Of a stretch of 64,000 bases of DNA, positions 15,620 to 62,139 are shown in pieces. The DNA lies in NCBI GenBank assembly GCA_904063045.1, contig CAJFCJ010000002.1:1758422-1822421 (forward strand), read 5' to 3'. The DNA comes from Dimorphilus gyrociliatus. Lineage: Eukaryota > Animalia > Annelida. The notes beneath the pieces are model-generated. The model was not told the DNA's origin and did not search any database. It saw only the letters and a program-made list of their open reading frames with translations. The stretch's first letter is position 1. Each line of letters opens with the position of its first letter. Position numbers and translations under genes: made by a program.

Positions 15620-17311
15620 TTATTGATGTAACTGATGAGGATGATGATGATGCGGCGGAGGTGGGGGTGGAGGTGGTGGATGATATAATTCATGTAATGG
15701 CGGATGATAAGGCTGCATTTGATGAAGGCTAGGAGCTGGCGGAGGAGGTAGATGTGATTGCACGTAATAAGTCGGAATATTTGGTGCCATGTGATCAACA
15801 TAGGCCAAATGAGAAGGGGGGACGCAAAATTCTGAAGGAGGTCTCGGTTGTAGATGAACTTGATCTAGGCTTGGTGGAGGAGGAGGTGGAGGTGGTGGAG
15901 GGGGAATAGACATATGTTCTTGGTAGTCAAGTAGCTCATTGGCTTTTTCTCTCTTTCTGCCACCAATCCCGTGAGCTTTGTTTCTATGGCACCATAATGT
16001 ACACGGATGTTTGTAAGTTTGTCCGCAATCTTTACACTTGTATTTAGCAGTTGGTGAATGTAAATTAACATGAGCACGCAAATTTTTTCTATCGGCAAAT
16101 GACATACCACAATGCTGACAAATGTGGGGTTTTTGTCCAGCATGTCCATTCATATGAGCTTTCAACACGCTGAGAGCAGTAAATGATTTTCCACATGTAC
16201 TACAAAGGTACGGTCTTTCTCCAGTGTGTATCCTTGTATGAGAGTTATAAGTTGATTTACAAGTGAAGGTTTGTTTACATATAGAGCATTCATATGGCCT
16301 TTCTCCTGTATGCTGGCGTTTGTGCTTAACTAGGGCTCCTCGTTCACGATAAGCCTTGTTACAACCAGGCTCTTGGCAAACATATGGCTTTGCACCAGTA
16401 TGAGTATGGAGATGCAGTTTAAGGGCATGCTGCTCTAGAAATCCCTTGTTGCAAATAGAGCACTTGTGGGGTTTATATCCTGAATGTCTTTGTAAATGTT
16501 GAGTTAAACCATTTTTCTGAGCAAAAGATTTCCCGCATTCAGAACATTTATAAGGCTTTTCTCCAGTATGAATGACCATATGTCTTTTTAATAAAGCAGT
16601 CGATTTGAAAATTTTTGAGCACTCCGCGCATTTGAACGATCCAATTTTATTGTGTTCTGTTTTCGTATGTTTTTTTAGTTGATCCTTTGTTTCAAAAGTT
16701 ATGTTGCAAATAAGACAAATAATAGCGTCAGGACCTGCTTCTGTAGGTACTTTGACTTCTAGGGTAGATTTTTCCTTTTTTGTTGACGGTGCAGGCATTC
16801 TATCTTTATGCTGTCTAAGTTTATGAGCATATAATCCATTTTTCTGAGGAAAGTTTTGACCACAAAACTCACATTTGAAGGGTTTATCACCAGTATGAAT
16901 TACCATGTGATTTTTAACAGTACCAGCGTTAAAAAAATGTTTAAAGCATATTGGACATTTGTATCCTTTTTCATCCTTATGAGTCTGAGTGTGCACTTTT
17001 AACTTACCTTTAGTTGGAAAATTCTGTTTGCAAAGAACACAAGGGTATTTTTCATCTCTTCTCGGTCTCAGTACCATATTTTTATCATCGGTTGGATGAC
17101 TTTCGCTGTGTTTTTTAAATTCTGATGTTGACGAAAAGTGCTTGTTGCACTGTTTACACTTATAACTGACATCTAAAGAATGTTCATTGGAATAATGTTG
17201 TTTAGCAGACTCTTCGTTTTCTAATGCAATTCCACATAGAAAGCAAGATAAGCTTCTTGGTTGGTCATCATCAGATTCCGATGAAAAAGATGATTGGGAC
17301 GAGTCCGTCAT
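15620..17311 (-). CDS. C2H2 zinc-finger protein (14 fingers, Pro/His-rich tail), intronless
   Basis: 14 C-x2/4-C...H-x3/4-H units with TGEKPY-type linkers, an acidic N-terminus and a poly-Pro/His C-terminus. Confidence 0.92.
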   Translation of the reverse strand: MTDSSQSSFSSESDDDQPRSLSCFLCGIALENEESAKQHYSNEHSLDVSYKCKQCNKHFSSTSEFKKHSESHPTDDKNMVLRPRRDEKYPCVLCKQNFPTKGKLKVHTQTHKDEKGYKCPICFKHFFNAGTVKNHMVIHTGDKPFKCEFCGQNFPQKNGLYAHKLRQHKDRMPAPSTKKEKSTLEVKVPTEAGPDAIICLICNITFETKDQLKKHTKTEHNKIGSFKCAECSKIFKSTALLKRHMVIHTGEKPYKCSECGKSFAQKNGLTQHLQRHSGYKPHKCSICNKGFLEQHALKLHLHTHTGAKPYVCQEPGCNKAYRERGALVKHKRQHTGERPYECSICKQTFTCKSTYNSHTRIHTGERPYLCSTCGKSFTALSVLKAHMNGHAGQKPHICQHCGMSFADRKNLRAHVNLHSPTAKYKCKDCGQTYKHPCTLWCHRNKAHGIGGRKREKANELLDYQEHMSIPPPPPPPPPPPSLDQVHLQPRPPSEFCVPPSHLAYVDHMAPNIPTYYVQSHLPPPPAPSLHQMQPYHPPLHELYHPPPPPPPPPHHHHPHQLHQ

Positions 17312-23507: not shown

Positions 23508-23930
23508 AATCGCTCTCAGCGCTTTTAATTCAAAAAATATTTTATTTTTTTTTTACTTACAAAGCCATATGGAAGATTAAGAGATATATCTATACTTATA
23601 TATATATATATATATATATTTAATTTTTATTGGAAATTTTAATACAGTAACTATATTCATTTTAATCAAACAAACAAAAAAAAGAAAAAACAACAATATA
23701 TTGAACTTAATTTCTAGATTGGTCGGTATTAATTACCGGAAGTAGTGTATTTTCTTTCAGTTTTTTTTGTGTTCCAATGTAGAGGAATAGAGCTTTAGTT
23801 TTAATAAGTTTCTATCAAAATATAGTGCTTAAAAGAAAACTATTGTCTACTTTTAAAAACAATATATGTAAAGTGTATATTGTATCGTTCTAAATCTTAG
23901 AACAATAAATGAAACTAAGAAGTTAAAATT

Positions 23931-24766: not shown

Positions 24767-27700
24767 ATGGGTGATTTCTTTAGGAGTGCCTTTGGCTACA
24801 TAGGTAATACAGTTTCAAGAGATGACAATGATTTTGTGGGACAACTCGTGGAAGTTGGACAACAGAGTCTCAAGATCAAGCGGCTTATTGCCGAAGGTAA
24901 ATACAACACTTATGAGCAATCAAGAAAAATAGATTCAATAGTTCATAACTAATATCAATTAATATTTACAGGCGGTTTCGCTTATGTATACGAAGCTGTA
25001 GATAATAAATCTGGTAAAGAGTACGCGCTTAAGGTTCTATTTCATCTTATCAATTACTCCCCCTCATTTTTACTTGACTCTTGAAAATTGATTTTTACAG
25101 AGATTATTAGCAGCAGATGATGAAAAGTGTAAAGCTATAGTCAGAGAAATTACATTTTTCGTAAGCCATTAATCCACATTGTTTATATAGCATTTTTCAT
25201 TTATTTGTTATTTTCATCCTTTCAGAAAAAGCTCTCTGGTCATCCAAATATTGTCAAATTTATGAACGCAGCGAGTATTGGGAAGAATGATTCTGGTCAT
25301 GGTCAAGCTGAATATTTACTTTTGACAGAATTATGTACAGGAGGACAATTAGTAGATGTCATTAACAAAAAAGAACGCTTAAAAGTCGAACAAATTCTTC
25401 CCTGTTTCTATCAAATATGCAATGCTGTACAGCACATGCATGATCAAAAGCCTCCAATTATACATAGAGATTTAAAGGTTCACTAATCGCAATTTACGAA
25501 TACGCAGAACCTTTTTAATCGATATTTTGACATTTTAGATCGAAAATGTGCTTATTAGTTCAAGTGGCCATATGAAGCTATGCGATTTTGGAAGTGCTAC
25601 TGTTCAAGTATTCGAGCCTGATCCTAGTTGGTCGGTAAATAAGAGAAATCTTATAGAAGAAGAAGTAAGTTGTTTTTATTTGGTCAAATAGCTTATTTAT
25701 TTTTCGATGTCAATTATAGCTTGCTAAACATACAACACCAATGTATAGAACGCCAGAAATTTTAGATCTTTTTCTCAATTATCCTATTAATCATCAATCA
25801 GATATATGGGTACGTTGTTTATAAATATACTTAATCATATAATTTAGACTATATATATATATATATATATTGTTTCTAGGCACTTGGTTGTGTCCTATTT
25901 ATGTTATGTTTCCTCGAGCATCCCTATGAAGATTCAGCTAAATTAAGAATACTGAATGCTAATTATAAAATACCTCATGGAGATACAGTTTACAAATGTT
26001 TTCATGACCTCATTAGTAAGTATTTTTTTGAAAAGCCTATAAATATAAATGTATGTTAGAGAGCGTTCTTTTCTTTTTTTTATAATAAGGGCGATGTTCT
26101 CTTAAGACAATGTTCTATACTAGTCTATAAAGTTATTGAATTTGTTATTTTTTTTTAAAAGGAGCATCTTTTAATGTGGATCCAAGGGAGAGACCAACCA
26201 TTCACGTTATTATGGCCCAGATGGAAGAAATAGCCGCAGTTTCATCAGTTAATTTACAATCACCCTTTATAGGTATTACGAATAGTAATATTACTCCTGA
26301 ATCTAATCGTCAAGCTGGGCGTAAGTAATTTTGATTGATTATTAGATTACAAAAGTTAATAAGTCTTTTGCCTCTATTTTGATAGAAACAAATTATTATA
26401 ATCAAGATGATGGACGCCCGTCACCTAAAAATGATAATATGGGCGGAATGGCTCAATCTTCAATGGGTTCATTGTTTAACTCTCTTAGAGGTGGTGCAGC
26501 AAATCTTATGAAAAATGTTAAAGATGCTTCTAGTAAAGTTATGGAAACAGTACAGACAATGAGTAAAGCAGATGGTTTAGATATATCTTATATTACAGCA
26601 CGGATAATTGGTAATAATCGTACTATTAGCAATTACATATATATTATAAAGTACAGTAGTATTTATTAATAAACTAATTATTCTGTCTCTCTTCTAAATT
26701 ATTAGCTATGTCTTATCCTGCCGAAGGAATGGAAGCAGCAATTAAAAATAATATAGATGACGTTCGAGTATTCTTAGACGCTAGACATTCCAACTCTTTT
26801 GCGGTTTATAATTTAACCCATAGAACTTATCGACACGGAAAATTTGAGAATAGGGTTTGTTTTTTCTCTTAATCAATTAAGATTGTATTTAATTGCCTTA
26901 TTATTAATTATTGTTAAGTTTAATGTAAATTGACTATGATTTGTTTTTTGAAAATATATAAAGGTTTCTGAATTGGATTGGCAACCAAAAAGAGCTCCAC
27001 CGTTTAGTAGTTTACTAAACGTTTGTAAAAATATGCATTTATGGTTACGCCAGGGAGGTAGAAACGTTTGCGTTCTGCATTGTTTGGTAAGTCAATATTT
27101 TTATTTTCTTGATATTATCTCTCTACGGTTGATATTTGTTTGTATTATAGGACGGCAAATCAAATACGGCCTTCGCAGTTGCCGCTGTTCTATGCTACTG
27201 CAGATTATTTGACAAACCTAGTCAAGCTCTTCAATTATTTGCTGCCGCTAGGGGACCCCCGTTAATTCAACCTTCACACGAGCGGTTTGTTCATTGATAT
27301 TGTTTGATTTCTCTTTATTTTTATTTTATTTCATCATTTAGATACGTTCAATACATTTGTGATATGGTTGGAGAAGAGAATTACATTCCACACTCAAAAT
27401 ACGTTAATCTGAACAGATTAGTTATGGCTCCAGTACCACTTTTCAATAGATCAAAAAGCGGTTGTAGGCCTTTTGTAGAAGTTTTTATGGGTGATGAAAG
27501 GGTATTAACCACAAGTATTGAATATGACAAAATGAGGTATTTGATAAAATGATTAAATAATTAAATATTTATCTAGTTTTCTTTTTATAGAATGTTCTCT
27601 GTTGATGATTCTCATATAAGCATTCCAATAAGTTGTCAAGTATGTGGGGATGTTACAATTGTTGTTTATCATGCACGTTCAACACTTGGGGGTAAAGTAC

Positions 27701-36900: not shown

Positions 36901-38016
36901 TCAAAGTTGTTTGTCATGGATGCTAAACAAACAACAAAAGTTGGTATTCTAAATTAAATTAAGCTCCATAACAAGATCTTAACGATATTTATTATTTGGT
37001 AGAAATGAGTCTCTGGATCCTTTCTGTAATATACCTCCAGGAAAACAAGTTGTAACAAAATGTGATGAGGATAAAAAATCCGTCGTTATGTGTAATATGG
37101 TTAAATATAAACAACCACTTATCGATGACTTTCAAGTACTAATTATTTAATACTGATATATATATATATATATATGTATAGAATATTGTATTTTTAATAT
37201 AACTATCCTCAGAATTTTCTAAGCATTCCCGGAATTAAAAATTCAGATGTTAAATATTATGGCAGTAGCGCTAGTTTGTCGGATTTTTGTCCTTTTTTTC
37301 AAGAATTTGAATGGAAAACTAATGGAAAATTTCTGAGAACTTCAGTTTGTTCATTCCCTGAAAATCAATTAGGAAAAGTCAATAATTTCTTACTGGAAAC
37401 TTATGGAAAAGAGTAAATAGTCTTTGTTACTTATAACATATTTTCTAATGTTCTTTTACATTTCTATTAGGTCACGCTGTTTTGAAAACCTAAGATATAC
37501 TCCATGGTATACGTTAAATTGTAAGAATAGATCAAAATTTACGCTTCCTCACGTTGGAAGTGCATGTTATAAGGTTCTACTACAATTGTAAAGTATTATA
37601 TCATATATTATAATGTTATCAATTTCCTTTAGTATGAATGCGATCCTGATAATGGACTACTAGTTACCGTAGGGAAGGAAAAGATCAAATGTTCGCGAAA
37701 AGGGGAAGTTGTTGAGGTATTTTACTAGTTCACGTATTTGTTTATTTCAATTATATTTAAAATTCAGATTTCGTCTATTGTTGATAATTGGCTGCATAAA
37801 GGGAATATTATTTGCCCTGATTGCTTGGATATGTGCCCAAAGGCATTTTGTCCTCTACAACAAACTTTCACACCAATTTCAAAGACAGAAGATAACCTTA
37901 CAACTTGCAAAGATATGTATGATGCAAATTCGTCTAACATCTTATTATCAAGCTTGCAATACTTTTCTAGCTTTGTTTTTATTGTAAATGTAATAATAAA
38001 TGTTGATCTCATTTAA
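33989..38016 (+). CDS. LMLN: Leishmanolysin-like (invadolysin, M8) metallopeptidase, multi-exon
   Basis: Signal peptide, [12 protein letters not shown]|[10 protein letters not shown], zinc motif [25 protein letters not shown], Cys-rich C-terminus and a hydrophobic GPI-type tail. Confidence 0.9.
34964..35960 (-). CDS. CREC-family (calumenin/reticulocalbin-like) EF-hand protein nested in an LMLN intron, 4 exons
   Basis: Signal peptide, multiple EF-hands ([36 protein letters not shown]), [10 protein letters not shown] and [12 protein letters not shown] typical of CREC proteins. Confidence 0.85.
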
Positions 38017-49453: not shown

Positions 49454-50473
49454 TTAACGATTTGTTTGAGTAATAATAATTTTAATAACTTTATTTTTAC
49501 TTGTACAATTATATGTAAATATCTTCAATATTTCTGCTCTAAAATTATCGCTAAATAGACAATATAAAATAAAATTAATAGATGAATTTGAAATATTGAA
49601 GATTGAAGCTATCAATTCCGCAACTTCCCAACTGCTATTTGGTATTTGATTATCGCTTTGTAAGCATGGATCTTTTTTTCTGCTCCATCCAGCTATTACT
49701 AGTATGCACTTTGGCAAATTTAAAATCATATAGATAATTACAATAGCAATTAATAATATTGTTAGCGATCTGTTGTGGCTATTTGCCCTAGCGGCATGAG
49801 TAGAGCTGACTATTGCTATTCTTACTTTTGTAGCAATTCTTAATTGACGAATTAAGAGAAAATTAATGATGGCTAGAGCACTCCACGGTATAATATACCA
49901 AAAAATTGGCAATAAGAACGAATGAAAAGCACATATATAACCTTTTAAGTTATCTTTAAGGTTGGCTGTAACAAGTTTTCCAATAATAGGTAGATCCCAC
50001 GTTTGCAAGTCATACGCAATCCAGTTAGGAAAAGTTAATACTAACGGAAAGCCAATAATAAAGGTAATAATACACACATGATTGAATTTACTTAATGTTC
50101 TTGAGTAGAAGGGTGATTTGACGGCAAGGTATCTTTGAATAGTTAAAGCAACTATAACTAGACTTGTTATTCCAAGCGATGTCCAATGAATGGGATTTAT
50201 GTATAGAGAAAGATAAGGTTCAATTTGAAATGTTACTCTTAAATATTCAAAATCGCTTAAGTTTAATAAATAAACTCTATAACGAATTATCGATGTACAA
50301 AGAACCATTAAATCAGAAGACACCAGTATTTGAAGATATCTTGTTGTTATTTGACTTCTTAAACTTTTTCGACATAAGATAGAGATCGTTAAAATATTCC
50401 CAAAAAGACCAATAGCTGTTAAAATTGCTATTGCAATCCGAACACGATTAACTATGTCGACGTAGTAAGTCAT
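49454..50473 (-). CDS. Class A peptide GPCR (FMRFamide/sex-peptide-receptor-like), intronless
   Basis: Seven hydrophobic segments, GN in TM1, SD in TM2, QRY at the TM3 end, NSSINFILYC in TM7. ATG taken at 50473. Confidence 0.85.
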   Translation of the reverse strand: MTYYVDIVNRVRIAIAILTAIGLFGNILTISILCRKSLRSQITTRYLQILVSSDLMVLCTSIIRYRVYLLNLSDFEYLRVTFQIEPYLSLYINPIHWTSLGITSLVIVALTIQRYLAVKSPFYSRTLSKFNHVCIITFIIGFPLVLTFPNWIAYDLQTWDLPIIGKLVTANLKDNLKGYICAFHSFLLPIFWYIIPWSALAIINFLLIRQLRIATKVRIAIVSSTHAARANSHNRSLTILLIAIVIIYMILNLPKCILVIAGWSRKKDPCLQSDNQIPNSSWEVAELIASIFNISNSSINFILYCLFSDNFRAEILKIFTYNCTSKNKVIKIIITQTNR

Positions 50474-51253
50474 TTCGTTGACTGAGAGGAGAAAAATGTT
50501 GTTCTTTTTTCTTACTTTCCACACAACTTACGACTTATGACGTCTATTTGCCAACTTCAGATAAGAAATTATGTACAATAAGTTTTTATTCAAATTATTC
50601 CTTAGAACGCACTTAGGCTACTCGTATACTCGTATCTCTTCTATTTCTTTACAATTGAATATTCAAAATTCAGTCCAATATATTTATAAGGAGAGATAGT
50701 TTTAATTTGTTTCCTAATTTCGTTATATGATAAACATGGAACATAATTTGAATTGTTGTCAATTAACGGGATTTATTATAAAGTAAATTATATGAATGGA
50801 AAATAATAGTAGATATTTTTATAAATAACTTTACGTTTTTATTGTCGAACTTTATGACTTTTGACAAGAGATTTACACTTATTGCACACGTTGGCTAGAG
50901 ATAAAAGTCCTTTAACAATAATTTTTAAAGGTGAAATTTTTAATTAATATATAACAGCCGTTTCTCCGAATACTTCTTTGCAAGTTTTACTTAACTTTTT
51001 GCTTAAATTCGACTATTTACAAATTTTGTCAACCGTGAAACTTCATAAAAGTTCTCATTGGTTCTTCCTGCGGTACTAATATCACGTGATCACAATAATC
51101 AGCAGACAACATTGTACCGTATTTATCAACTTTTGTTTCATTTTGATACAGCAAAGTAAGTCTGTTTCAAGCTTTTTTCCCTTTTGATCAGTTAGTGATT
51201 TTAATTTTATTTACTTGTCCATTATTTGCAGAACGAAATAAAGGTTTCAAACA

Positions 51254-54200
51254 ATGGAGAATTCTAAGGTTCCAACTATTCCTACTTTGGATGAAATTTT
51301 GAAAGATTTTCCTCCAGGACCATTAGATGTTTATCGCAAAAAAGCATCTTTCGATTGGAAAAAACTAAAATTACATATTCACGGTGAAGATTACCTTAAA
51401 TTTCAGGTGAGATACGTTTACTTTTGTAAATATTTTAAGCAAGTTTTATTTTGTCCCAGTAAATGAACCTTGAAAAAAGTTTTTGTTACCTTATTGAATC
51501 TCAAGGTCGTGATAGGGGGCAAGATAAAGATTTCTTGAAATTTTATTGTCAATATCAGTAGTTTTTGTATTGATAAAATTGACAAAAAAAGAGTAATTAA
51601 TATATTGTTATCGAGTTAACTAATATAGTTTATATCTTTAAAAGCGAAAAAGTAGAGCTTTTAAAAGTTCTATAGATGGAATGTAAATATTTATTAATTA
51701 CTCTAAATTTAAATGCATTTTTAAGGAAAAATATAAACTCAAAGGAAAATATGCATATAATTTATAGTATGCTGTTTGGAATGCCTTGGAAAATGATCCC
51801 ATTTTTTACCATTCGGATAAATCAATAAGTTTAGAAGAAGAACGTGAAAGAACGTTTAATCGAGTGAAGCGTCTCTTCGAATATGATTTTGGTAATAGCG
51901 AAGCAGCGGGTAATTGTGGGCCAATGGCTGGTCATGCATCAGTATGCACACTGTTGCCTGTAGACGGGTCTATGAATACGCGATATGGATTGAGTGTCTT
52001 TGTACGTAAACTTATTTCTCTTTTTTTTCAAAACAGTACACTATTTGGAATGCTCTTGAAAATGATCCAACATTCACTCGCAATATTGGAAGTTTAACCT
52101 TAGAACAAATCCGAAAAAATTCAGACAATCATGTTAAACGATATTTTGAATATGATTTTTTAAATGATGACGATATTGCCAACAATCCACTTCTGGTTGT
52201 CGCTCACATTGGAGCATTATCTAGCTATGATCCAAGTTCCTATGCTAAAAATATGCTCAATAGAGAGGTTTCCATTCTCAATAAATTAAGCCAATTAATT
52301 TCCATTTAAATGCAATAAAAAGCATCTTATTTTTTGAGTAATTTTATATATTCATATCAAAATCTAATTCAGATGTTCGGAAGAACAACTAGAACTGCTG
52401 GTTCCGAAAGACATAAAGAATATTTTGATGATGTTACAAACTTTCAAGTAAAAATATATTTCTTTAATTTATTTTCGCTAGATTGACATTAATTTTTTTC
52501 ATAGAAATTTGGATGTTTTGCTTTAACCGAATTGAGCCACGGATCGAATACAAAAGCAATGAGAACTACTGCAACGTATGATCCATCTACTGAACAGTTC
52601 ATTCTAAATACGCCGGATATCGAAGCAACGAAAATTTGGGTAGGAAATCTTGGTAAAACAGCTACTCACGCCGTTGTCTATGCCCAATTAATTACTCCAG
52701 ATGGAGTGAATCACGGACTTCATTCATTTGTTGTTAAAGTTCGAGATGAAAGAACACTTCTGGCTGTTCCTGGCGTTATTGTTGGTGATATGGGAGAGAA
52801 AATAGGCTTAAATGGTATTGATAACGGATTTGTAGCTTTCAATAATGTACGAATCCCAAGAGAAAACCTTTTAAATAAAACTGGAGACGTTACTTCAGAG
52901 GGAAAGTATGTTACTCCTTTCAAAGATCCAAATAAAAGATTCGGAGCTTCCCTTGGCGCCTTATCGGGTAGATTATTATTGTTATGATACTATTGTCTCA
53001 GTTAACTTTACATGGTTTTCTTCCAGGTGGCCGTGTTACAATTAACTGTATTTCCGTAACTAACTTGAAATTAGCTATCTGTATCGCTATTAGATATTCA
53101 TGTACAAGGCGTCAATTCGGACCCAAAGAGGGTGTTGAATTGCCTGTAATCGAATATCAAATGCAACAATGGCGATTAATACCGTATTTAGCGGCAGCTT
53201 ACGTTTTGGATGTATTTTCACGTCAATTTTTCATGAATTTTGTTGAATTACAAATTGGATTAATGGCTGGAGATAAATCTGATAGGCAAGATAATTTGGG
53301 AAAAGAATTACATGCTCTATCGTGCGCGTCTAAGGCAGTTCATAGTTGGATTGCAAGAGATGCAATTCAAGAATGTAGAGAAGCTTGTGGAGGTCACGGT
53401 TATTTTAAAAGTAAGAAATTGATCATTTTATTTGAGTAATATCAATTTTTTAAATATCATTTTTCAAATTTATAGTTAACAGATTAGGGGAATTGAGAAA
53501 CGATCATGATCCAAATTGTACTTATGAAGGAGACAACAATGTTATTTTACAGCAAACTAGTAACTACGTTTTGGCAAGCTATGGAGCAGTGAAAAGAGGT
53601 ACAATACTGTCAACTCCCCTGAACGCCTGCGAACCTTTGAATAGATTCAAAACTATTTTGACGTCTACATTCAGACGTAAATCTGATACTGTATCATTAA
53701 ATGAAGTTATAGAGGCTTATGAATGGCTAATATGCTATTTAAGCGAACAGAGCGCCGAAAAGTTGACTTTGGAAAGCAAATCAAATGATTCCTTTACGGC
53801 GAGAAACAATAGTCAAGTCTACTTTTGCCGAACCCTTGCAATTGTAACTTTTGAACACCATCTTTTGAATCGAGTCCGTGAATTTGTTAACAACGAAACC
53901 GAGGATAGTCTCAAACCCGTTTTGTCGCAAATGCTAACACTATTTTCCGCCTGGATTCTGGAAAAACACTTGTCTACTTTATACGAAGGAGGCTATTGCT
54001 CTGGTAAAGACCTAGCAACCTGCGTAAGAAAGACGGTCGTGGATCTTAGCCATAACCTCAAGAACGAAGCTGCAGCACTTGTTGATGCTATCGCTCCACC
54101 AGATTTTGTTCTAAATTCCCCAATTGGCTCTTCCAATGGAGAAGTAAGTTAACTTATAAATTAGTATAAACTCTTATTGATAATAAATTTCGTTAAAAGA

Positions 54201-54322
54201 TTTACAAGAACCTATACAGTGCAATGATTCAAACTCCTGGAGCTTTGGAAAGAACAAATTGGTGGAGAGAATTTTCCAATAAACCAAACGTAGGAAGTTT
54301 GAGACCGGTTTCTAAACTCTGA
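51254..54322 (+). CDS. ACOX3: Peroxisomal acyl-CoA oxidase 3 (pristanoyl-CoA oxidase), multi-exon with duplicated exon 2
   Basis: [78 protein letters not shown]; ends ...PVSKL* (PTS1). Confidence 0.94.
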
Positions 54323-54837
54323 TTCTTTTTTTGTTGATCATCTATTAAATAATCAAATTTAATTAGGTCATAAACACCTGTTGAATTCAATAAAACTAAA
54401 GCGATTTTAATCGTTATTTTATATTGTATGTATGCACTATAAACTTTGAAGAACATCCATATTGGCTATATTTTACTTTATCAGAAGATAATAAAACTAC
54501 CATTTTTCATTATTCATTATTAACGGCAAACGTAAACTTTACAGAATGGAATTTTATACCAAATTCAAGATATTTAAATGACAAACTCCAATTGATCTAT
54601 ATTATCCACTGCATTCGTTAGTGACAATCCATCAAACTTCAATTTAAGTGCGAAATTTCTTTATAGCACAAGCTTTAAGGCACATTACAGCTTCATTTCT
54701 TTTAATATTCTGAGTACTAAAATTCAACAATTTCGTAAAGCATCAAACGAACAGTTAAAGTTACATTATATGAATAACTTGGATTTCTATGGAAAAGCGC
54801 CATCTTTCTTCTCTTTTCATCTGCTAGATGTCGTTGC

Positions 54838-54854
54838 GAAACGAAACCGAAACT
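54838..54854 (+). promoter_or_regulatory. ISRE/IRF-type element upstream of ZNFX1
   Basis: GAAAC-GAAACC-GAAACT. Positions 54843-54854 match GAAANNGAAACT exactly, 50 nt before the ZNFX1 ATG. Confidence 0.55.
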
Positions 54855-54904
54855 AAAAATTTTCTCAATTACTCCTACAGCAATGACTGTTGCCATTTCT
54901 AACG

Positions 54905-57900
54905 ATGAGCGAGCTGTTGAACGAGTTAAAGAACGCACAGACAAGGAGAGGAGGTAAAGGAGAAGCTGGAAGAGGAAGTAGAATAGGAGGTCAAAGAGGA
55001 GGTCAAAGAGGAGGTCAAAGAGGAGGTGGAAAGGAAGGGGGAGAAGAAGGTGGAAATGAGTCTCACAGAGCAAACAGAAGAGAGGCTGTAAGTCCAAATG
55101 ACAGGGAGGGAGGATATCGAAAAGAGAATGGTGGTCCTAGATGGGGGCGCAAGGATTTTGAAACCTTCAAGGAGAGTAATGACGCCGATATGGTAGCAAT
55201 GACTATAAATGGAAAGCAAAGCATCCTCCACGAACTGTTCGAGAGAGAAACTGTACTAGTAGTAAAATTGACAGTGTTAATAGCCGAAAAGTGCGCCTTT
55301 CCGGGAGTCAAGAAATCTATACTTAAACGTTTTACAGAATGTTCAAAGTCCAAGGTATGATGCAGTTCTCTTTACAAAGAAAACTTTCCAATAATAATCC
55401 ATAATGCTTTTTCTTATTACAGAAATATCTTATAAATAAAATTCGTAATATGAGTACAATTACGAATGAAAGAGATGTTTGTGAATTTCTACTAAACATA
55501 TGCAGTATATTTAAAACATGCTGCAAACTGTTTTCAGACTGCTGGGAAGATCTGGAAGATTTATGGGAATGTGTTATGAGCACTTGTTTATTTCTAAAAA
55601 TGAAATTTCGATGGCAAGATGAGAATGAATTACTGGTTACTGTAGAGAATATTAACGAGGTGAATATATTTCATCTTCTTGAGATTATTACAAAATACTT
55701 TCAATATTTTAAATAATAATTGTGTTTCATAGATGAAAAATTTATTTCGAGCTGGAGCTGAAGTTGTTTCAAATGAAGCTCCTAAATCTCGCTTTAAATC
55801 AACAATAAACTATGATAAAGAACCTGAAGATGATATTTCTAATTATTCCGAATATCCTGCGGCAAAGGAATTACAACGAGACTTTACTCCATTCATTAGA
55901 CCGATTAAAAAGCACGGCGCTTATTTAAACGAGAAACAATACTTGGACATTTATTATAGACTGATGAGAGAGGATTTAATAAGACCTCTTCGAGAAGGAA
56001 TTAAAAAGCTTATCGAAGAAGATTCAAGTCTCGGAGTTTATAAAAATGTTAAAGTAAACGAAATTTTTGTTGATAAACGTGGCATCTCAAGGTTAGCAAA
56101 ATTTGACAAACTAAAAAGAATTAACTGGGAAACTTCGAAACGTCTACTTCCGGGATCATTGATATGTTTATCATCCGATAATTTCAATAGTCTGCATTTT
56201 GCAACAGTTGGAAGTCGGGATAAAAGTATTATTTCCAGTGGTTACGTAACAATAAAATTTGAGAAGAGTGAAGAGCTTGATTTGCAAAAAACCTTTGTCA
56301 TGGTTGAAAGTGAAGGATATTTTGAATCATATAGATATATTTTAAAAGGTTTACAGGAAATGCAAACAGAAGACATACCGTTCAAAGAAGAGATTATTTA
56401 TTGCAGAAAAGACCATAGACTTCCTAACTATATTAAAAATTCTCCTTATTGGGATCTTACCTGCTTGATTCCAAACGATTCTTCTACTTCAAAGGAATTG
56501 AAATCAACTTTGACTAATTTTAATGTTCTTGGTACACAAAGCTGGCCGAATAATGAACAATTAAACTTGGACACTTCTCAATTCGAAGCAATTCGATCTG
56601 TATTCAGAAATAGAATAACCTTAATCCAAGGTCCACCTGGAGCAGGTAAAACTTACGTTGGGCTGAAATTGGCAAATATTCTATTGAAAAACAAACAAAA
56701 ATGGAAAGCTGAGAATAATAGTCCTATTTTAGTTGTTGCTTATACTAATCATGCTTTGGATCAATTTTTGGAAGGAGTATCTTCATTTGAGGAAAGTATC
56801 GTTAGGTTTGGTTCAAGATGTAATTCTGAATCGCTGAAGAAGTTTAGTTTACAAGAAAAAAGAAGGGAAACACTATCAAATTCATCTTCATGGGCAAAAA
56901 AAATAAAACACCGAAGATATGAAGCGTTCCGGGATAGAGAAGAGGCTAAATGTCAATTAGAGATCTTGAAAAACATGAAAAAAAAATTTACTAATGGCTT
57001 TGCAAATATAGAAGATTTTGATGTTGAAGAAAGTTGGTTATTACACGAAATAGAAACTTCATATAGTAATTATCAGGTTAATCCCTTTGTGCAGTGGCTA
57101 GTTTTAGAACCAGAATCTATGATGGAAACCATGCAACAAAATGCAGAAAGTGGCCTTTCGTCAAAACCAGATAACAAAGAACAGAATCTGTCAGCCGAAG
57201 AGCAGAAATTTCAAAACGAAGAAGACGTTGACATCTCTTTGCAAGAAATAGAAATGGAACATCGAGACATAGAAGCAGATGTTAAACAAATAGAAGAAGT
57301 TCGTAAAACAATTGAAGATAAAGAGAATATCAACATAAACATAGACTTAGAAAACGATGAAGGATGGACAATGAAAATTGATATGAAAAAACTCAGAAAC
57401 AGAGTACAAAAAGAGTTTACTTCAACTGATATCATGGACAAAACGACAGTCGACAATATTTACAGCATTCAAAAACTGTCGGGAAAGGAACGATGGCAAC
57501 TTTATAGATACTGGGTACAACAGCAAATCAGAAGACTAGATAAGAAGATAAATGCATATGGAAATAAATATCAAATTTTATTCGACGAACTATGTGACTA
57601 CTCTGATCAAATTGATATGGAAACAGCTAAGAATTCATCTGTAATTGCTATGACAACAACATGCGCTTCTAGGCTTCGACATTTGATTAAACAGATAAAG
57701 CCTACAATTGTACTTTTTGAGGAAGCTGCAGAAGTTTTCGAATCACATGTTCTCACTTCATTATCTAAAGATACTCAGCATTTAATTCTCATTGGCGATC
57801 ATCTTCAATTGAAACCTAAACCAATTGTTTATGATCTCGCTATCAACTATAATCTAGAGATTTCTTTGTTTGAGAGACTTGTTGAAAATGATTTGCCCCA

Positions 57901-60349
57901 CGTTACACTCGGCGTTCAAAGACGAATGAGACCAGAAGTCTCTTATCTCATTCAAGATATATATCCAGATCTACAGGATCATTTTAGTACAAAGAATAGG
58001 GATGGGATCAAAGGAGTGGATAAAAGCGTTCTTTTCTTTAATCATAAAGAGAACGAAGATATATTATTGGATGATGGACATAGTAAGCGCAACACATTCG
58101 AGGCGCAAATGATAACCGGTCTCGTTAAGTATCTACGTCAACAGAATTACGATGGAGAAAGGATTACGATCATTACTCCCTACATGGGACAAGTAGTACT
58201 TATAAAGAAATGCATGAAGGCGCCCAATGATAAAGTGAAACAAATATTCAACGGTGTTCGAGTGGTAGCCATAGACAATTATCAAGGAGAAGAAAATGAT
58301 ATTATCATCTTATCCCTTGTCCGATGTAATACCCGAGGAATTACGGGATTTGTGACTATACAGAATCGAATTTGCGTAATGTTGTCAAGGGCAAAATATG
58401 GAATGTTTATCTTTGGTAATCTTGATATGTTCGCCTCTAAATCTGATTTATGGAAAAAAATCAAACAAAGATTAGAAGAAAAAGATCAAATTGTCAACTC
58501 ATTAAAACTGGCATGTCAAAATCACAATATTGGCACGGAGGTCAAAAAACCATCAGACTTTTTAAAAGTCCCAGAAGGTGGATGTTCTAAAAAATGTGGA
58601 CAGAGATTACCATGTGGACATATTTGTCTATTGTCATGTCATGCCTTTGACCCCGAACATAAAAAGTATCCCTGTCAACAACCATGCAGCAAAATTCTTT
58701 GCGATCTTGATCACAAATGTCCAAAACTATGTTTCCAATCCTGTCCACCTTGTATGAAAAAAGTGAAGAAATATATTGCTGATTGTGGACATACAGACGA
58801 AGTTCCTTGCTCAGTACCAGAATCAAACTGGAACTGTCGTAGTAAGTGTACAAAAAGTCTGAATTGTGGTCATAAATGCGAAAGAAAATGCTATGAAAAA
58901 TGTGTCTGCTTTGTTCCTTGCAAAAAAAGTCTATTAGGATGCGATCATGTATGTCAGGGCAACTGTTCTACATGCTTTAATGGTAAAATGCACGTTCCTT
59001 GTAATAAACCATGCAAAAGAATTCTTGTATGTGGACATGAATGTGAAGATAGGTGCACTAAGGAGTGCCCACCATGCACACGAGATTGTGACATGAAATG
59101 CATCCACTCGGAATGCAGTCTGAAATGTGGAGACCCATGCTATATTTGTAAAATGGAATGTCCTTTAAAGTGCGAACACCAGATTTGCGAAAAAAAATGT
59201 GGTGAAGCATGCAGTATTAAACCCTGCACAAGACGTTGCAAGAAGACTCTTTCTTGTAAACACCGTTGCATAGGTTTATGTGGTGATGAATGTCCGCCAA
59301 TTTGTGGACAATGCAATCCTTCCGTCTATGAAATATTCTTTGGAGTGGAGGATGAAAATTCTACATTTGTCTTTTTGCCCGATTGTCAACATTGTATTGA
59401 ATCCGAATCAATGGATGAATGGATGATGAGAGAAAGTAACAAAGTAGGCCTAAAGTCTTGTCCCAAGTGCAGCACAATTGTTAGAAAATGTACAAGATAT
59501 AATAATATAATTAATCGACAATTAAAGAATGTCGAAGAAGCCAAGAAAAAAATGATTAAGCCTATTAGTGAAGAAGATGTAAAGAAAAACAAAGTGCTGA
59601 ATGATTATCTTCAACTCCACTCGAAAAAAAACAGCTTTTTCCCTATAAGTTTACTTCGTCTTCAAACCTATATAACTTCAAGTATTGAACAGATGAAGGA
59701 ACATGGAACAAATGAAAGGGATCTGGCTAAAATCGAAACTTTAATATCGATCAGCAAAAAGCTTATTGAATTCGCAAATAATCGATATATCAGTTCCGAT
59801 AGTAAAATGGAATTGGACAATATTTGTAAATGGTTGATGAATATTGAAACTAGCTTTAGTGATCAACAAGAAAGTGACTTGAACAATGCTTTAGACAGAA
59901 TGAAGATTTTCCTGATAATTGACTGTTTTAATCGCCAAACAACACAACTAGAGTCAATTTTGAACCAATGTCTGGACTATCAGGCTTTGTCCGTATATAA
60001 TAAAATGCTATTGGGAGCCTATGTGAAGTCTAGTGATTTAGATTATCTATTTAAAGCACTAAAAGTTGTGGGAGATAAGGAGGGCATGGACCTGAATGAA
60101 GAATTAACAATGAAAAAGAAAATGGCTATAATAAGAGCTATGGACATACCTAGAGGACATTGGTTTAAATGTCCTAAAGGTCATATATATGCAATTGGCG
60201 AGTGCGGTGGAGCAGTAGAAGAGTCTAGATGCCCTGATTGTAAATCAATAATCGGAGGAACAGGTCATAGATTAGCGGAAGGTAATGCACATATTGGAAG
60301 TTTTGATGGATCAGCTATGTCCTCATATGATACAGCAGTAGCAGGTTAG
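54905..60349 (+). CDS. ZNFX1: NFX1-type zinc-finger SF1 RNA helicase with C-terminal RZ finger, 3 exons (~1767 aa)
   Basis: Exons 54905-55354, 55423-55659 and 55733-60349. YLDIYYRLMREDLIRPLREG, KRLLPGSLICLS, QGPPGAGKT, FEEAAEV, LILIGDHLQLKP, DNYQGEE, a run of NF-X1 Cys/His fingers, and the RZ finger GHWFKCPKGHIYAIGECGG..CPDC. Confidence 0.95.
54985..55027 (+). repeat. 12-nt coding tandem repeat (AGGAGGTCAAAG x3.5) encoding GGQR repeats
   Basis: Read directly within ZNFX1 exon 1. Confidence 0.9.
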
Positions 60350-60837
60350 CCTAAAATTGTTTAATAAATAATTTTTCAATGCTAATGATATGTTCTGTTT
60401 TTAAAAGCTCAAGACGAACGTCCTCTGATCGACTTTGATTAGACGCTGACAAATCTATGAAACGAAAAAGAAAAATTAGTGATTTTTAAGAATGTTAGAC
60501 TTTAATTACCACAAATACCATATGTATTTTGTAGATTTTACAGTTATCTTCAATCAAAATTATTGTTAATGCATTCTTTACGTTTTAAAAGATAGTATTT
60601 GTACTGTTTCGTCCGTTCTCTCTTTTTTTTCTATATGTTTTCTTGGAAAAATTTGTTGCTAAGCTTTAAAGAACTTTTTTTTTTCTGGATAATCATAATA
60701 AAATAGAATATCTTTTCATTGATTAGAATTAGGTCTGTTTATTGTGTCAAAAGAATTGAATTATATACAGTATATTTACAACAAAAGAAAAGTTATATTA
60801 TTATCATCAATGTAAGCATCGCAAAGAAACTAGAACT

Positions 60838-60881
60838 GGAAAAACCATGACTCATTAGGTTTCAGTTTCGATTTCGGTTTC
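60838..60881. promoter_or_regulatory. kappaB-like + AP-1 + 4x IRF half-site cluster
   Basis: GGAAAAACC (60838-46), TGACTCA (60848-54), then ggTTTC-agTTTC-gaTTTC-ggTTTC (60858-81) with a 6-nt period. Confidence 0.5.
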
Positions 60882-60958
60882 TTGGTGTTTATACCATATG
60901 TATTTTGGAGGCTTTAAAGTTTCGAAAACAGATTAAACGAGGTAATCAATTAAATTTA

Positions 60959-61052
60959 ACTTGTTGATTGCTATCGCCCCACCAGACTTTGTCCTGAATT
61001 CACAATTGACTCTTCCAAGTAAGTTAATTTTTTAATTAGTACAAACTTTTAA
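60959..61052 (+). pseudogene. Decayed copy of the ACOX3 penultimate-exon end plus the following intron start
   Basis: Aligns by eye to 54077-54172 (acttgttgat.gctatcgc.ccaccaga.tttgt.ct.aatt...tcttccaa...gtaagttaa...aattagta.aaact) with small indels. Confidence 0.85.
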
Positions 61053-61084
61053 TTTGTATGAACAAGTCTAACTTCTTGTAAGTA

Positions 61085-61400
61085 ACGCCTTTCTTTTGTT
61101 CTAATTCATAGTATATGGACATCTATTAAAGATTGGTGAGAGAAGATTTATTAAGATCTCTTAGAGACAGTGTTAAGAACTAAGCATAAGGGTGAATATA
61201 ATAGTACCATTTATTGAAAAGTGGGCATCCCTTTAAAGGAAATTGTTCAATGTGCTACAATTGACAAATTCGTCCTGAGATGTATTCTTTCATGCCAAAA
61301 GACAGTGTTATGTTTTTATAAACTAATTGAAACAGAGTAGTTAATTGATGACATCTCTCAACATGAAATAATCGCCTTTCACAATAAGATGTTTGGCCGT
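61085..61400 (+). pseudogene. Collapsed ZNFX1 paralogue relic
   Basis: 61112-61180 reads YMDIY*RLVREDLLRSLRDSVKN versus YLDIYYRLMREDLIRPLREGIKK. From 61211 it reads LLKSGHPFKGNCSMCYN*QIRP plus frameshifted CILSCQKTVLC, versus LLGCDHVCQGNCSTCFNGKMHVPCNKPCKRILVC. A weaker AFHNKM versus SVYNKM match follows. Confidence 0.8.
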
Positions 61401-61647
61401 TTTGAAAACAAGATTTGTTTATCAAAATAGTAGATGTTGCTTTTGTAATCTTCTTCGTTCGCTATCGTTCCTACCTATCTTTTAAAAAAACTTAAAGAGC
61501 CTTTATTCTTTGAAATTCTATATTATACTCTTTAAAGTACTGTTAAAACAACTGTTCAAAGATCAAGCTGTATCCAATAGCTGTCGTACTATATCGTACA
61601 AAGTTTGGCCGTAATACCGATGGTCATAACTCTCCTTTATTGCAAAA

Positions 61648-62139
61648 ATGAAGTGGAAAACATATGTTGCTTACCTTTGTTTATCCTTAGTAAAATTCTC
61701 GTATTCATTGCAGTGCTTTTCTTGTAGAGAATGCGATATTGAAAGCCCTGGAAAAGTTACACCGTGTCCAACGGCTTGTTATTATGGAATTATAGGTTGG
61801 CTACAAATGCGTAATATTTTTACATAAGATAACTCATTTGAACGTACAGGACCTTTCATCAAACGTGGATGTTTGTCACGTAGCACACCAATTGATTATT
61901 CTACCTATAATTTTGACTTAGGATTAGCAAGATGTTATCATTCAGATACATCGAGTGGTGTGTTTTATGATAAGTATTGCGTTTGCACTTTTAATTCTTG
62001 TAATGAAAAACTATGTATGCAATCGAGCGTTGAAATTCTCTCTTATTGTATTTCTTGGTTTTACTTATCAATAGTTATAGTTCTCTTTGTAGTGTTAATG
62101 GTAGTTATATGTGGTATAATTAAATTACATATAGGATGA
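61648..62139 (+). CDS. Ly6/uPAR (three-finger, quiver-like) membrane protein, 2 exons
   Basis: Signal peptide MKWKTYVAYLCLSLVKFSYS, LQCFSCREC, a phase-1 intron, PFIKRGC, C-terminal CVCTFNSCN and a hydrophobic tail. Confidence 0.8.

Follow-up and report, generated by a model that had tools for sequence, protein, structure and literature searches.

Downstream of the ZNFX1 gene of the annelid Dimorphilus gyrociliatus, a short stretch of DNA holds dead, same-strand copies of the 3′ end of the adjacent acyl-CoA oxidase (ACOX) gene and of the N-terminal motif of ZNFX1. Three copies are present in all, counting a scrap of the ZNFX1 3′ flank; they have sharp edges, are equally diverged from their sources, carry disabling changes and have no other source in the genome. 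The reading that we favor, at a probability of about 55%, is that positions 60891-61180 form a non-functional mosaic of three short nearby copies, all on the same strand, which would have been dead on arrival as a partial or mosaic local copy. Positions refer to the analyzed window, a stretch of 64,000 nucleotides from the forward strand of contig CAJFCJ010000002.1. The window is AT-rich (G+C approximately 32%) and belongs to an assembly of 77.9 Mb in 349 contigs, the published genome of this species being 73.8 Mb in size (PMC7854359).

Three genes follow each other on the plus strand of this part of the window, in the order acyl-CoA oxidase, ZNFX1 and a small cysteine-rich gene with a signal peptide. 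Their parts, and the sources of the three copies (designated A′, B′ and X′), are as follows:

53493-54143, plus strand: penultimate exon of the ACOX gene, whose end is the source of A′
54077-54176, plus strand: source of A′, made up of the exon end (54077-54143) and the first 33 nt of the following intron (54144-54176)
54200-54322, plus strand: last exon of the ACOX gene, after a 56-nt intron, with a translation ending in ...VSKL*
55733-60349, plus strand: intact, intronless ZNFX1 open reading frame of 1538 aa, with the source of B′ at 55940-56008
60515-60545, plus strand: source of X′, in the ZNFX1 3′ flank, 166-196 nt past the ZNFX1 stop codon
61648-62139, plus strand: downstream gene, encoding a signal peptide and then LQCFSC..., which starts 1.3 kb past ZNFX1

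On its predicted protein sequence, the gene ending at 54322 is identified as a peroxisomal acyl-CoA oxidase, putatively of the ACOX3 or ACOX1 subtype. It matches Pfam families PF01756 (ACOX, 7.5e-39), PF22924 and PF02770, and thus has the Acyl-CoA_dh_M, ACOX_C_alpha1 and ACOX domains, which were found by scanning its exons singly. The ...VSKL* end of the last exon has the form of a classic PTS1 peroxisomal targeting signal. In the ZNFX1 open reading frame, PF25396 (ZNFX1), PF13086 (AAA_11), PF13087 (AAA_12) and PF20173 (RZ finger) were all detected above threshold, and a protein search aligned it with vertebrate ZNFX1 at 36-38% identity across 98% of its length, the closest proteins in the database having at most about 40% identity. 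The parent gene therefore shows every hallmark of the ZNFX1 class, namely the ZNFX1 domain, the SF1 helicase core, NF-X1 fingers and a C-terminal RZ finger. Two open frames lie 5′ of it, at 54890-55360 (rich in RGG repeats) and 55450-55716; these may be further 5′ exons of ZNFX1, and a Pfam scan of both returned no match. Downstream of the stop codon, AATAAA occurs at 60364-60369 and at 60698-60703, and since the source of X′ sits between the two motifs, it would belong to the 3′-UTR only if the distal signal is used. The downstream gene looks Ly6/uPAR-like by eye, and its exons, scanned singly, matched no Pfam family.

Comparison of positions 60800-61600 with the rest of the window (blastn, word size 7) returned three significant same-strand matches and nothing further above noise. 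The resulting map of the mosaic, from 5′ to 3′, is as follows:

60891-60921, plus strand: X′, a copy of 60515-60545 (27/31 identical, E 7.7e-5)
60922-60958: spacer of 37 nt between X′ and A′
60959-61051, plus strand: A′, a copy of 54077-54176 (81/101 alignment columns identical, E 1.7e-19 against the first 60.7 kb of the window)
61030-61063, plus strand: 17-nt tandem microduplication at the 3′ edge of A′ (14/17 identical)
61064-61111: spacer of approximately 48 nt between A′ and B′
61112-61180, plus strand: B′ in its extended form, a copy of 55940-56008, corresponding to ZNFX1 codons 70-92
61116-61167, plus strand: core of B′, a copy of 55944-55995 (44/52 identical, no indel, E 8e-11)

A preliminary description of this DNA, made from the letters alone, had proposed four fragments of a collapsed ACOX-ZNFX1 duplicate. 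The first two, from ACOX and from the N-terminal part of ZNFX1, are A′ and B′, and both are confirmed, whereas the other two are unsupported. X′ had escaped that description. A′ starts 67 nt before the end of the penultimate ACOX exon and continues across the retained GTAAGT donor to reach 33 nt into the intron of 56 nt. Relative to its source it has 12 substitutions and three indels (+1, -1 and -7 nt); the microduplication at its 3′ edge supplies the first 12 nt of the A′-B′ spacer. At the protein level, 61112-61177 matches ZNFX1 residues 70-91 as YMDIY*RLVREDLLRSLRDSVK, with an in-frame stop at Y75. Disabling changes, already reported for this stretch, are thus present: the indels in the ACOX piece and the stop in the ZNFX1 piece. 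The 17-mer core of X′ is found exactly at two places only in the 78-Mb genome, the copy itself and its source.

When the whole 64 kb was compared with itself, the A′, B′ and X′ pairs were the sole non-simple repeats besides one pair of C2H2 zinc-finger units. The latter is an 87-nt direct repeat (16505-16591 and 16832-16917, 72% identity) that encodes minus-strand zinc-finger units with an HTGEKP-type linker, and it is an ordinary repeat inside one gene. Short palindromic tracts of simple repeats, with matches to one another on both strands, were also observed at 144-207, 23584-23654, 25837-25873 and 37144-37206. Additional pieces of the relic were sought by comparing 60350-61650 with 50000-60349 (blastn with word size 7, tblastx and tblastn), and none was found.

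The intron sequence within A′ indicates that the copies were made from genomic DNA, which rules out a retrocopy. The relic does resemble a processed pseudogene in being a short dead coding copy away from its gene, but it runs 33 nt into an intron with the donor intact and unites parts of two genes with part of a flank; its pieces are followed by no visible poly(A) tract, so that neither the lack of introns nor the poly(A) tail that mark processed pseudogenes is seen. Another paralogue as the source was likewise ruled out by genome-wide searches. A six-frame search of the whole genome for a second ZNFX1 yielded helicase-core relatives only (27-44% identity) and no further ZNFX1 of this kind, and the ACOX exon, used in the same type of search, retrieved its own gene alone. 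The adjacent genes are therefore the source of the copies, which lie 0.4 kb (X′), 6.9 kb (A′) and 5.2 kb (B′) downstream of the sequences they derive from.

A chimeric or mis-joined read in the contig is a scarcely credible explanation. The small size of the pieces is all that speaks for such an artefact. Substitutions (24) far outnumber indel events (3), which is not the error profile of raw long reads, and true copies brought together by a mis-join would be almost 100% identical. The stretch was also found only once in the assembly, by a whole-stretch DNA search that misses even the known 80% copy. Mis-assembly was set aside on these grounds, that is, on a substitution-dominated divergence of 14% together with a single occurrence in the assembly.

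Substitution divergence is much the same in the three pieces (X′ 4/31, A′ 12/93 and B′ 8/52; 24/176 or 13.6% in total), corresponding to a Jukes-Cantor distance of about 0.15 substitutions/site between the copies, and this equality fits a single age. We infer that the pieces arose in a single event and that the product was dead on arrival. The borders of the pieces are abrupt: when the six flanks of the copies were aligned with the matching source flanks, none scored above shuffled sequences. Of these source flanks, four are protein-coding and under selection, and at 14% divergence they would be easily recognizable if present; the lack of flank similarity at any of the six edges therefore makes all six of them rearrangement breakpoints. 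For the spacers, one 26-nt stretch of each was tested against the whole genome with up to three mismatches allowed, and no second occurrence was detected.

The order of the pieces carries further information on their origin. In the relic it is 3′ flank, ACOX, ZNFX1, and in the source locus ACOX, ZNFX1, 3′ flank. The collinear order proposed earlier thus holds for the ACOX and ZNFX1 pieces, which keep the succession and strand of their sources, but fails for the 3′-flank copy, which precedes both. Deletions alone could not have produced this arrangement from one tandem duplicate: starting from A-B-X-A′-B′-X″, they do not lead to source-X, X′, A′, B′. The verified pieces require a source interval of no more than 1.9 kb (54077-56008) plus one out-of-order 31-nt scrap of 3′ flank.

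These observations bear directly on the idea that the locus once carried a full tandem duplicate, consisting of the 3′ part of ACOX and the whole of ZNFX1 (at least 6.5 kb) and perhaps briefly functional, which large deletions reduced to less than 300 bp. In favor of such a history, the two gene pieces follow directly 3′ of the intact pair in unchanged order and strand, and the included intron marks a DNA-derived copy; moreover, shrinkage of gene families outweighs their complete loss in this compact genome (PMC7854359). On the other hand, the duplicate would need to have shed more than 96% of its length in about 0.15 substitutions/site while all survivors stayed approximately 86% identical, the survivors are separated by non-homologous filler and show no direct joins, so that filler insertions are needed as well, and the 3′-flank copy on the wrong side of the ACOX piece demands an extra event. 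Overall, we consider this history possible but doubtful. Its stronger form appears somewhat less probable still: in it, a second ZNFX1, an antiviral/small-RNA helicase, would once have worked at this place, and a handful of very large deletions would have erased all but the scraps in the course of about 0.15 substitutions/site. A partial copy or a template-switch mosaic requires fewer events than a collapsed duplicate of about 6.5 kb.

Nor does the rest of ZNFX1 leave a mark in the relic. The preliminary description envisaged a two-gene duplicate of about 6 kb, for which the stretch offers nothing detectable past ZNFX1 codon ~92: the remaining ~4.3 kb of ZNFX1 beyond that codon have no DNA-level trace, and the DNA after B′, aligned with the 4.7 kb of the ZNFX1 locus that are left, gave a best local score of 16, which 64 of 200 dinucleotide shuffles reached. 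The third proposed fragment, an NF-X1 finger at 61211-61261 (plus strand) set against 58931-58981, has no DNA-level signal and is unsupported as part of the relic. It is a match of 17 residues to ZNFX1 1067-1083 with 9/17 identical, and its score was reached by 3/300 shuffles and by 3/178 real chunks. Although this marginal protein match lies in the order expected of a collapsed full duplicate, its nucleotide identity is only 30/51 (59%), compared with 86% for the real pieces, and two metal ligands are missing in the relic sequence. At 13.6% divergence, the binomial probability of 21 or more mismatches in 51 is 1.2e-6, which makes the finger incompatible with the divergence of the real pieces and counts against the full duplicate. 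The fourth fragment, a weak C-terminal match near 59990, is at chance level, the best DNA alignment of 61262-61450 with 59850-60349 falling below nearly all shuffles; at the protein level it consists of 61329-61391 (plus strand) against residues 1405-1425, with a score of 27, and it appears solely as a link in a chain. The collinear chain of weak protein matches over the three forward frames scored 162, as compared with 121 ± 20 for shuffles, of which 12/600 reached that value. The reverse complement of the same stretch scored 161, so the chain score reflects composition and not homology, again to the disadvantage of a collapsed full duplicate.

With regard to selection, the synonymous changes listed for the ACOX piece had been taken as evidence that the copy diverged under coding constraint before dying. 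Four of them (gct>gcc, gat>gac, gtt>gtc and cta>ctg) are correct, but tcc>tca hinges on the placement of the 1-nt deletion; the piece therefore has four certain third-position synonymous changes and one that is alignment-dependent, against one or two replacements. For both coding pieces, dN/dS between the relic and the intact genes is 0.16-0.26, which is below 1 at P 0.001-0.016. A dN/dS of 1 is the wrong null here because the intact partner has always been under selection and contributes almost only synonymous changes. A dead-on-arrival relic predicts a value of about 0.55, and against that null the P of the observed ratio is 0.03-0.2, varying with the alignment used. The ACOX piece thus does have an excess of synonymous changes, most of which is expected from selection on the intact partner. 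Only 1 of the 17-22 differences falls at a second codon position. The low ratio and the few second-position changes speak for the full tandem duplicate, and being somewhat below the dead-on-arrival prediction, they weigh to some degree against the mosaic.

The nature of the replaced residues points the other way. B′ sits on the most conserved motif of the ZNFX1 N-terminal domain, YLDxxFRLLREDFVRPLREGI, in which the relic replaces L71, P85, G89 and I90, each invariant in 120 ZNFX1 homologues, in addition to the stop at Y75. The replacement of invariant residues leaves the relic lineage without a sign of ZNFX1-type constraint and argues against the collapsed full duplicate. In the ACOX piece, the one clear replacement affects a glycine conserved in rat, human and yeast ACOX structures, and the hint of ACOX constraint is too small to carry the claim. 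Given the P of 0.03-0.2 relative to a dead-on-arrival copy and the loss of invariant ZNFX1 residues, divergence under coding constraint appears unsupported. A further point against one neutral age for a dead-on-arrival mosaic is that synonymous divergence (approximately 0.35-0.4, 9-10 changes) exceeds that of the intron and flank pieces (9/64, approximately 0.14), which a single age explains poorly, both values being based on small counts. At the four certain synonymous sites (54077-54143 against 60959-61018), the intact gene has T or A and the relic has C or G. This hints, on a small count, that the intact gene drifted to A+T at silent sites and that the relic kept the older state.

A function for the scraps themselves, which might be transcribed from the downstream gene's promoter region into an RNA able to pair with the ACOX or ZNFX1 messages, or might serve the neighboring gene as regulatory DNA, seems very improbable, if slightly less so than an assembly artefact. 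The scraps do lie in the 1.3-kb spacer upstream of the plus-strand gene at 61648, and both coding pieces are the most conserved parts of their sources. However, they have diverged by about 14% with indels and a stop, as neutral DNA does, an identity of 85% is poor for small-RNA targeting, and no Rfam family came near threshold in 60300-61700 (the best was mir-59, with 26 bits against a threshold of 80).

Among known kinds of genomic debris, the relic shares with unprocessed pseudogene fragments the character of an intron-bearing DNA copy beside its parent on the same strand, with frameshifts, a stop and neutral-looking decay. It differs from them in keeping only 176 aligned nt, in three sharp-edged islands with filler between them, and in having one island out of order, without the graded collinear decay along the gene. 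Intron homology and disabling mutations are both present, but collinearity along the parent is not. The relic also has much in common with the templated or filler insertions that arise in error-prone break repair or by template switching in replication (polymerase-theta end joining, MMBIR/FoSTeS), which likewise consist of short snippets copied in cis from several templates, with abrupt edges and unmappable filler (PMC5068794). The match to a template mosaic extends to the number and nature of the pieces: three snippets (31, 93 and 52 nt), nearby templates, sharp edges and filler. In polymerase-theta end joining in C. elegans, complex multi-template inserts are documented; most templated inserts are small and come from within 20 bp of the break, and a minority (2-3%) are copied from more than 1 kb away (PMC5068794). 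The snippets of the relic (31-93 nt) are longer and their sources (0.4-6.9 kb) farther away than in the bulk of documented events, and the fact that typical inserts are much shorter and nearer to their source (PMC5068794) tells against template switching. The 37- and 48-nt fillers that match no source, and the collinearity of the two gene pieces on one strand, as in a decayed duplicate, are further points against the mosaic.

On balance, a mosaic of nearby copies still appears the most probable origin, and it was most likely produced by a single local event of error-prone duplication or repair. Replication or break repair may have switched between templates situated 0.4-6.9 kb upstream, or a partial copy of 54077-56008, an interval of 1.9 kb, could have been made and have lost its middle later. 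By either route the copy would never have encoded a working ACOX or ZNFX1. Approximately 14% substitutions, three small indels and the 17-nt microduplication would have accrued afterwards.

The relic is a small and ordinary bit of genomic debris, the like of which is known from many genomes, and it sheds little light on the biology of ZNFX1. What it offers is one data point on the gain and loss of DNA in a 78-Mb animal genome. The genome paper is silent on deletion collapse versus mosaic repair insertion (PMC7854359), and should scraps of this sort prove numerous, the two processes could be told apart by how the pieces are ordered and oriented and by their range of sizes. Birth and death of a second ZNFX1, as suggested in the preliminary description, is possible but doubtful. 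If the scraps are indeed remains of a second ZNFX1, the rate of DNA loss would be several-fold above the classic Drosophila estimate, and the locus would be a direct record of gene-family shrinkage during the miniaturization of an annelid genome.
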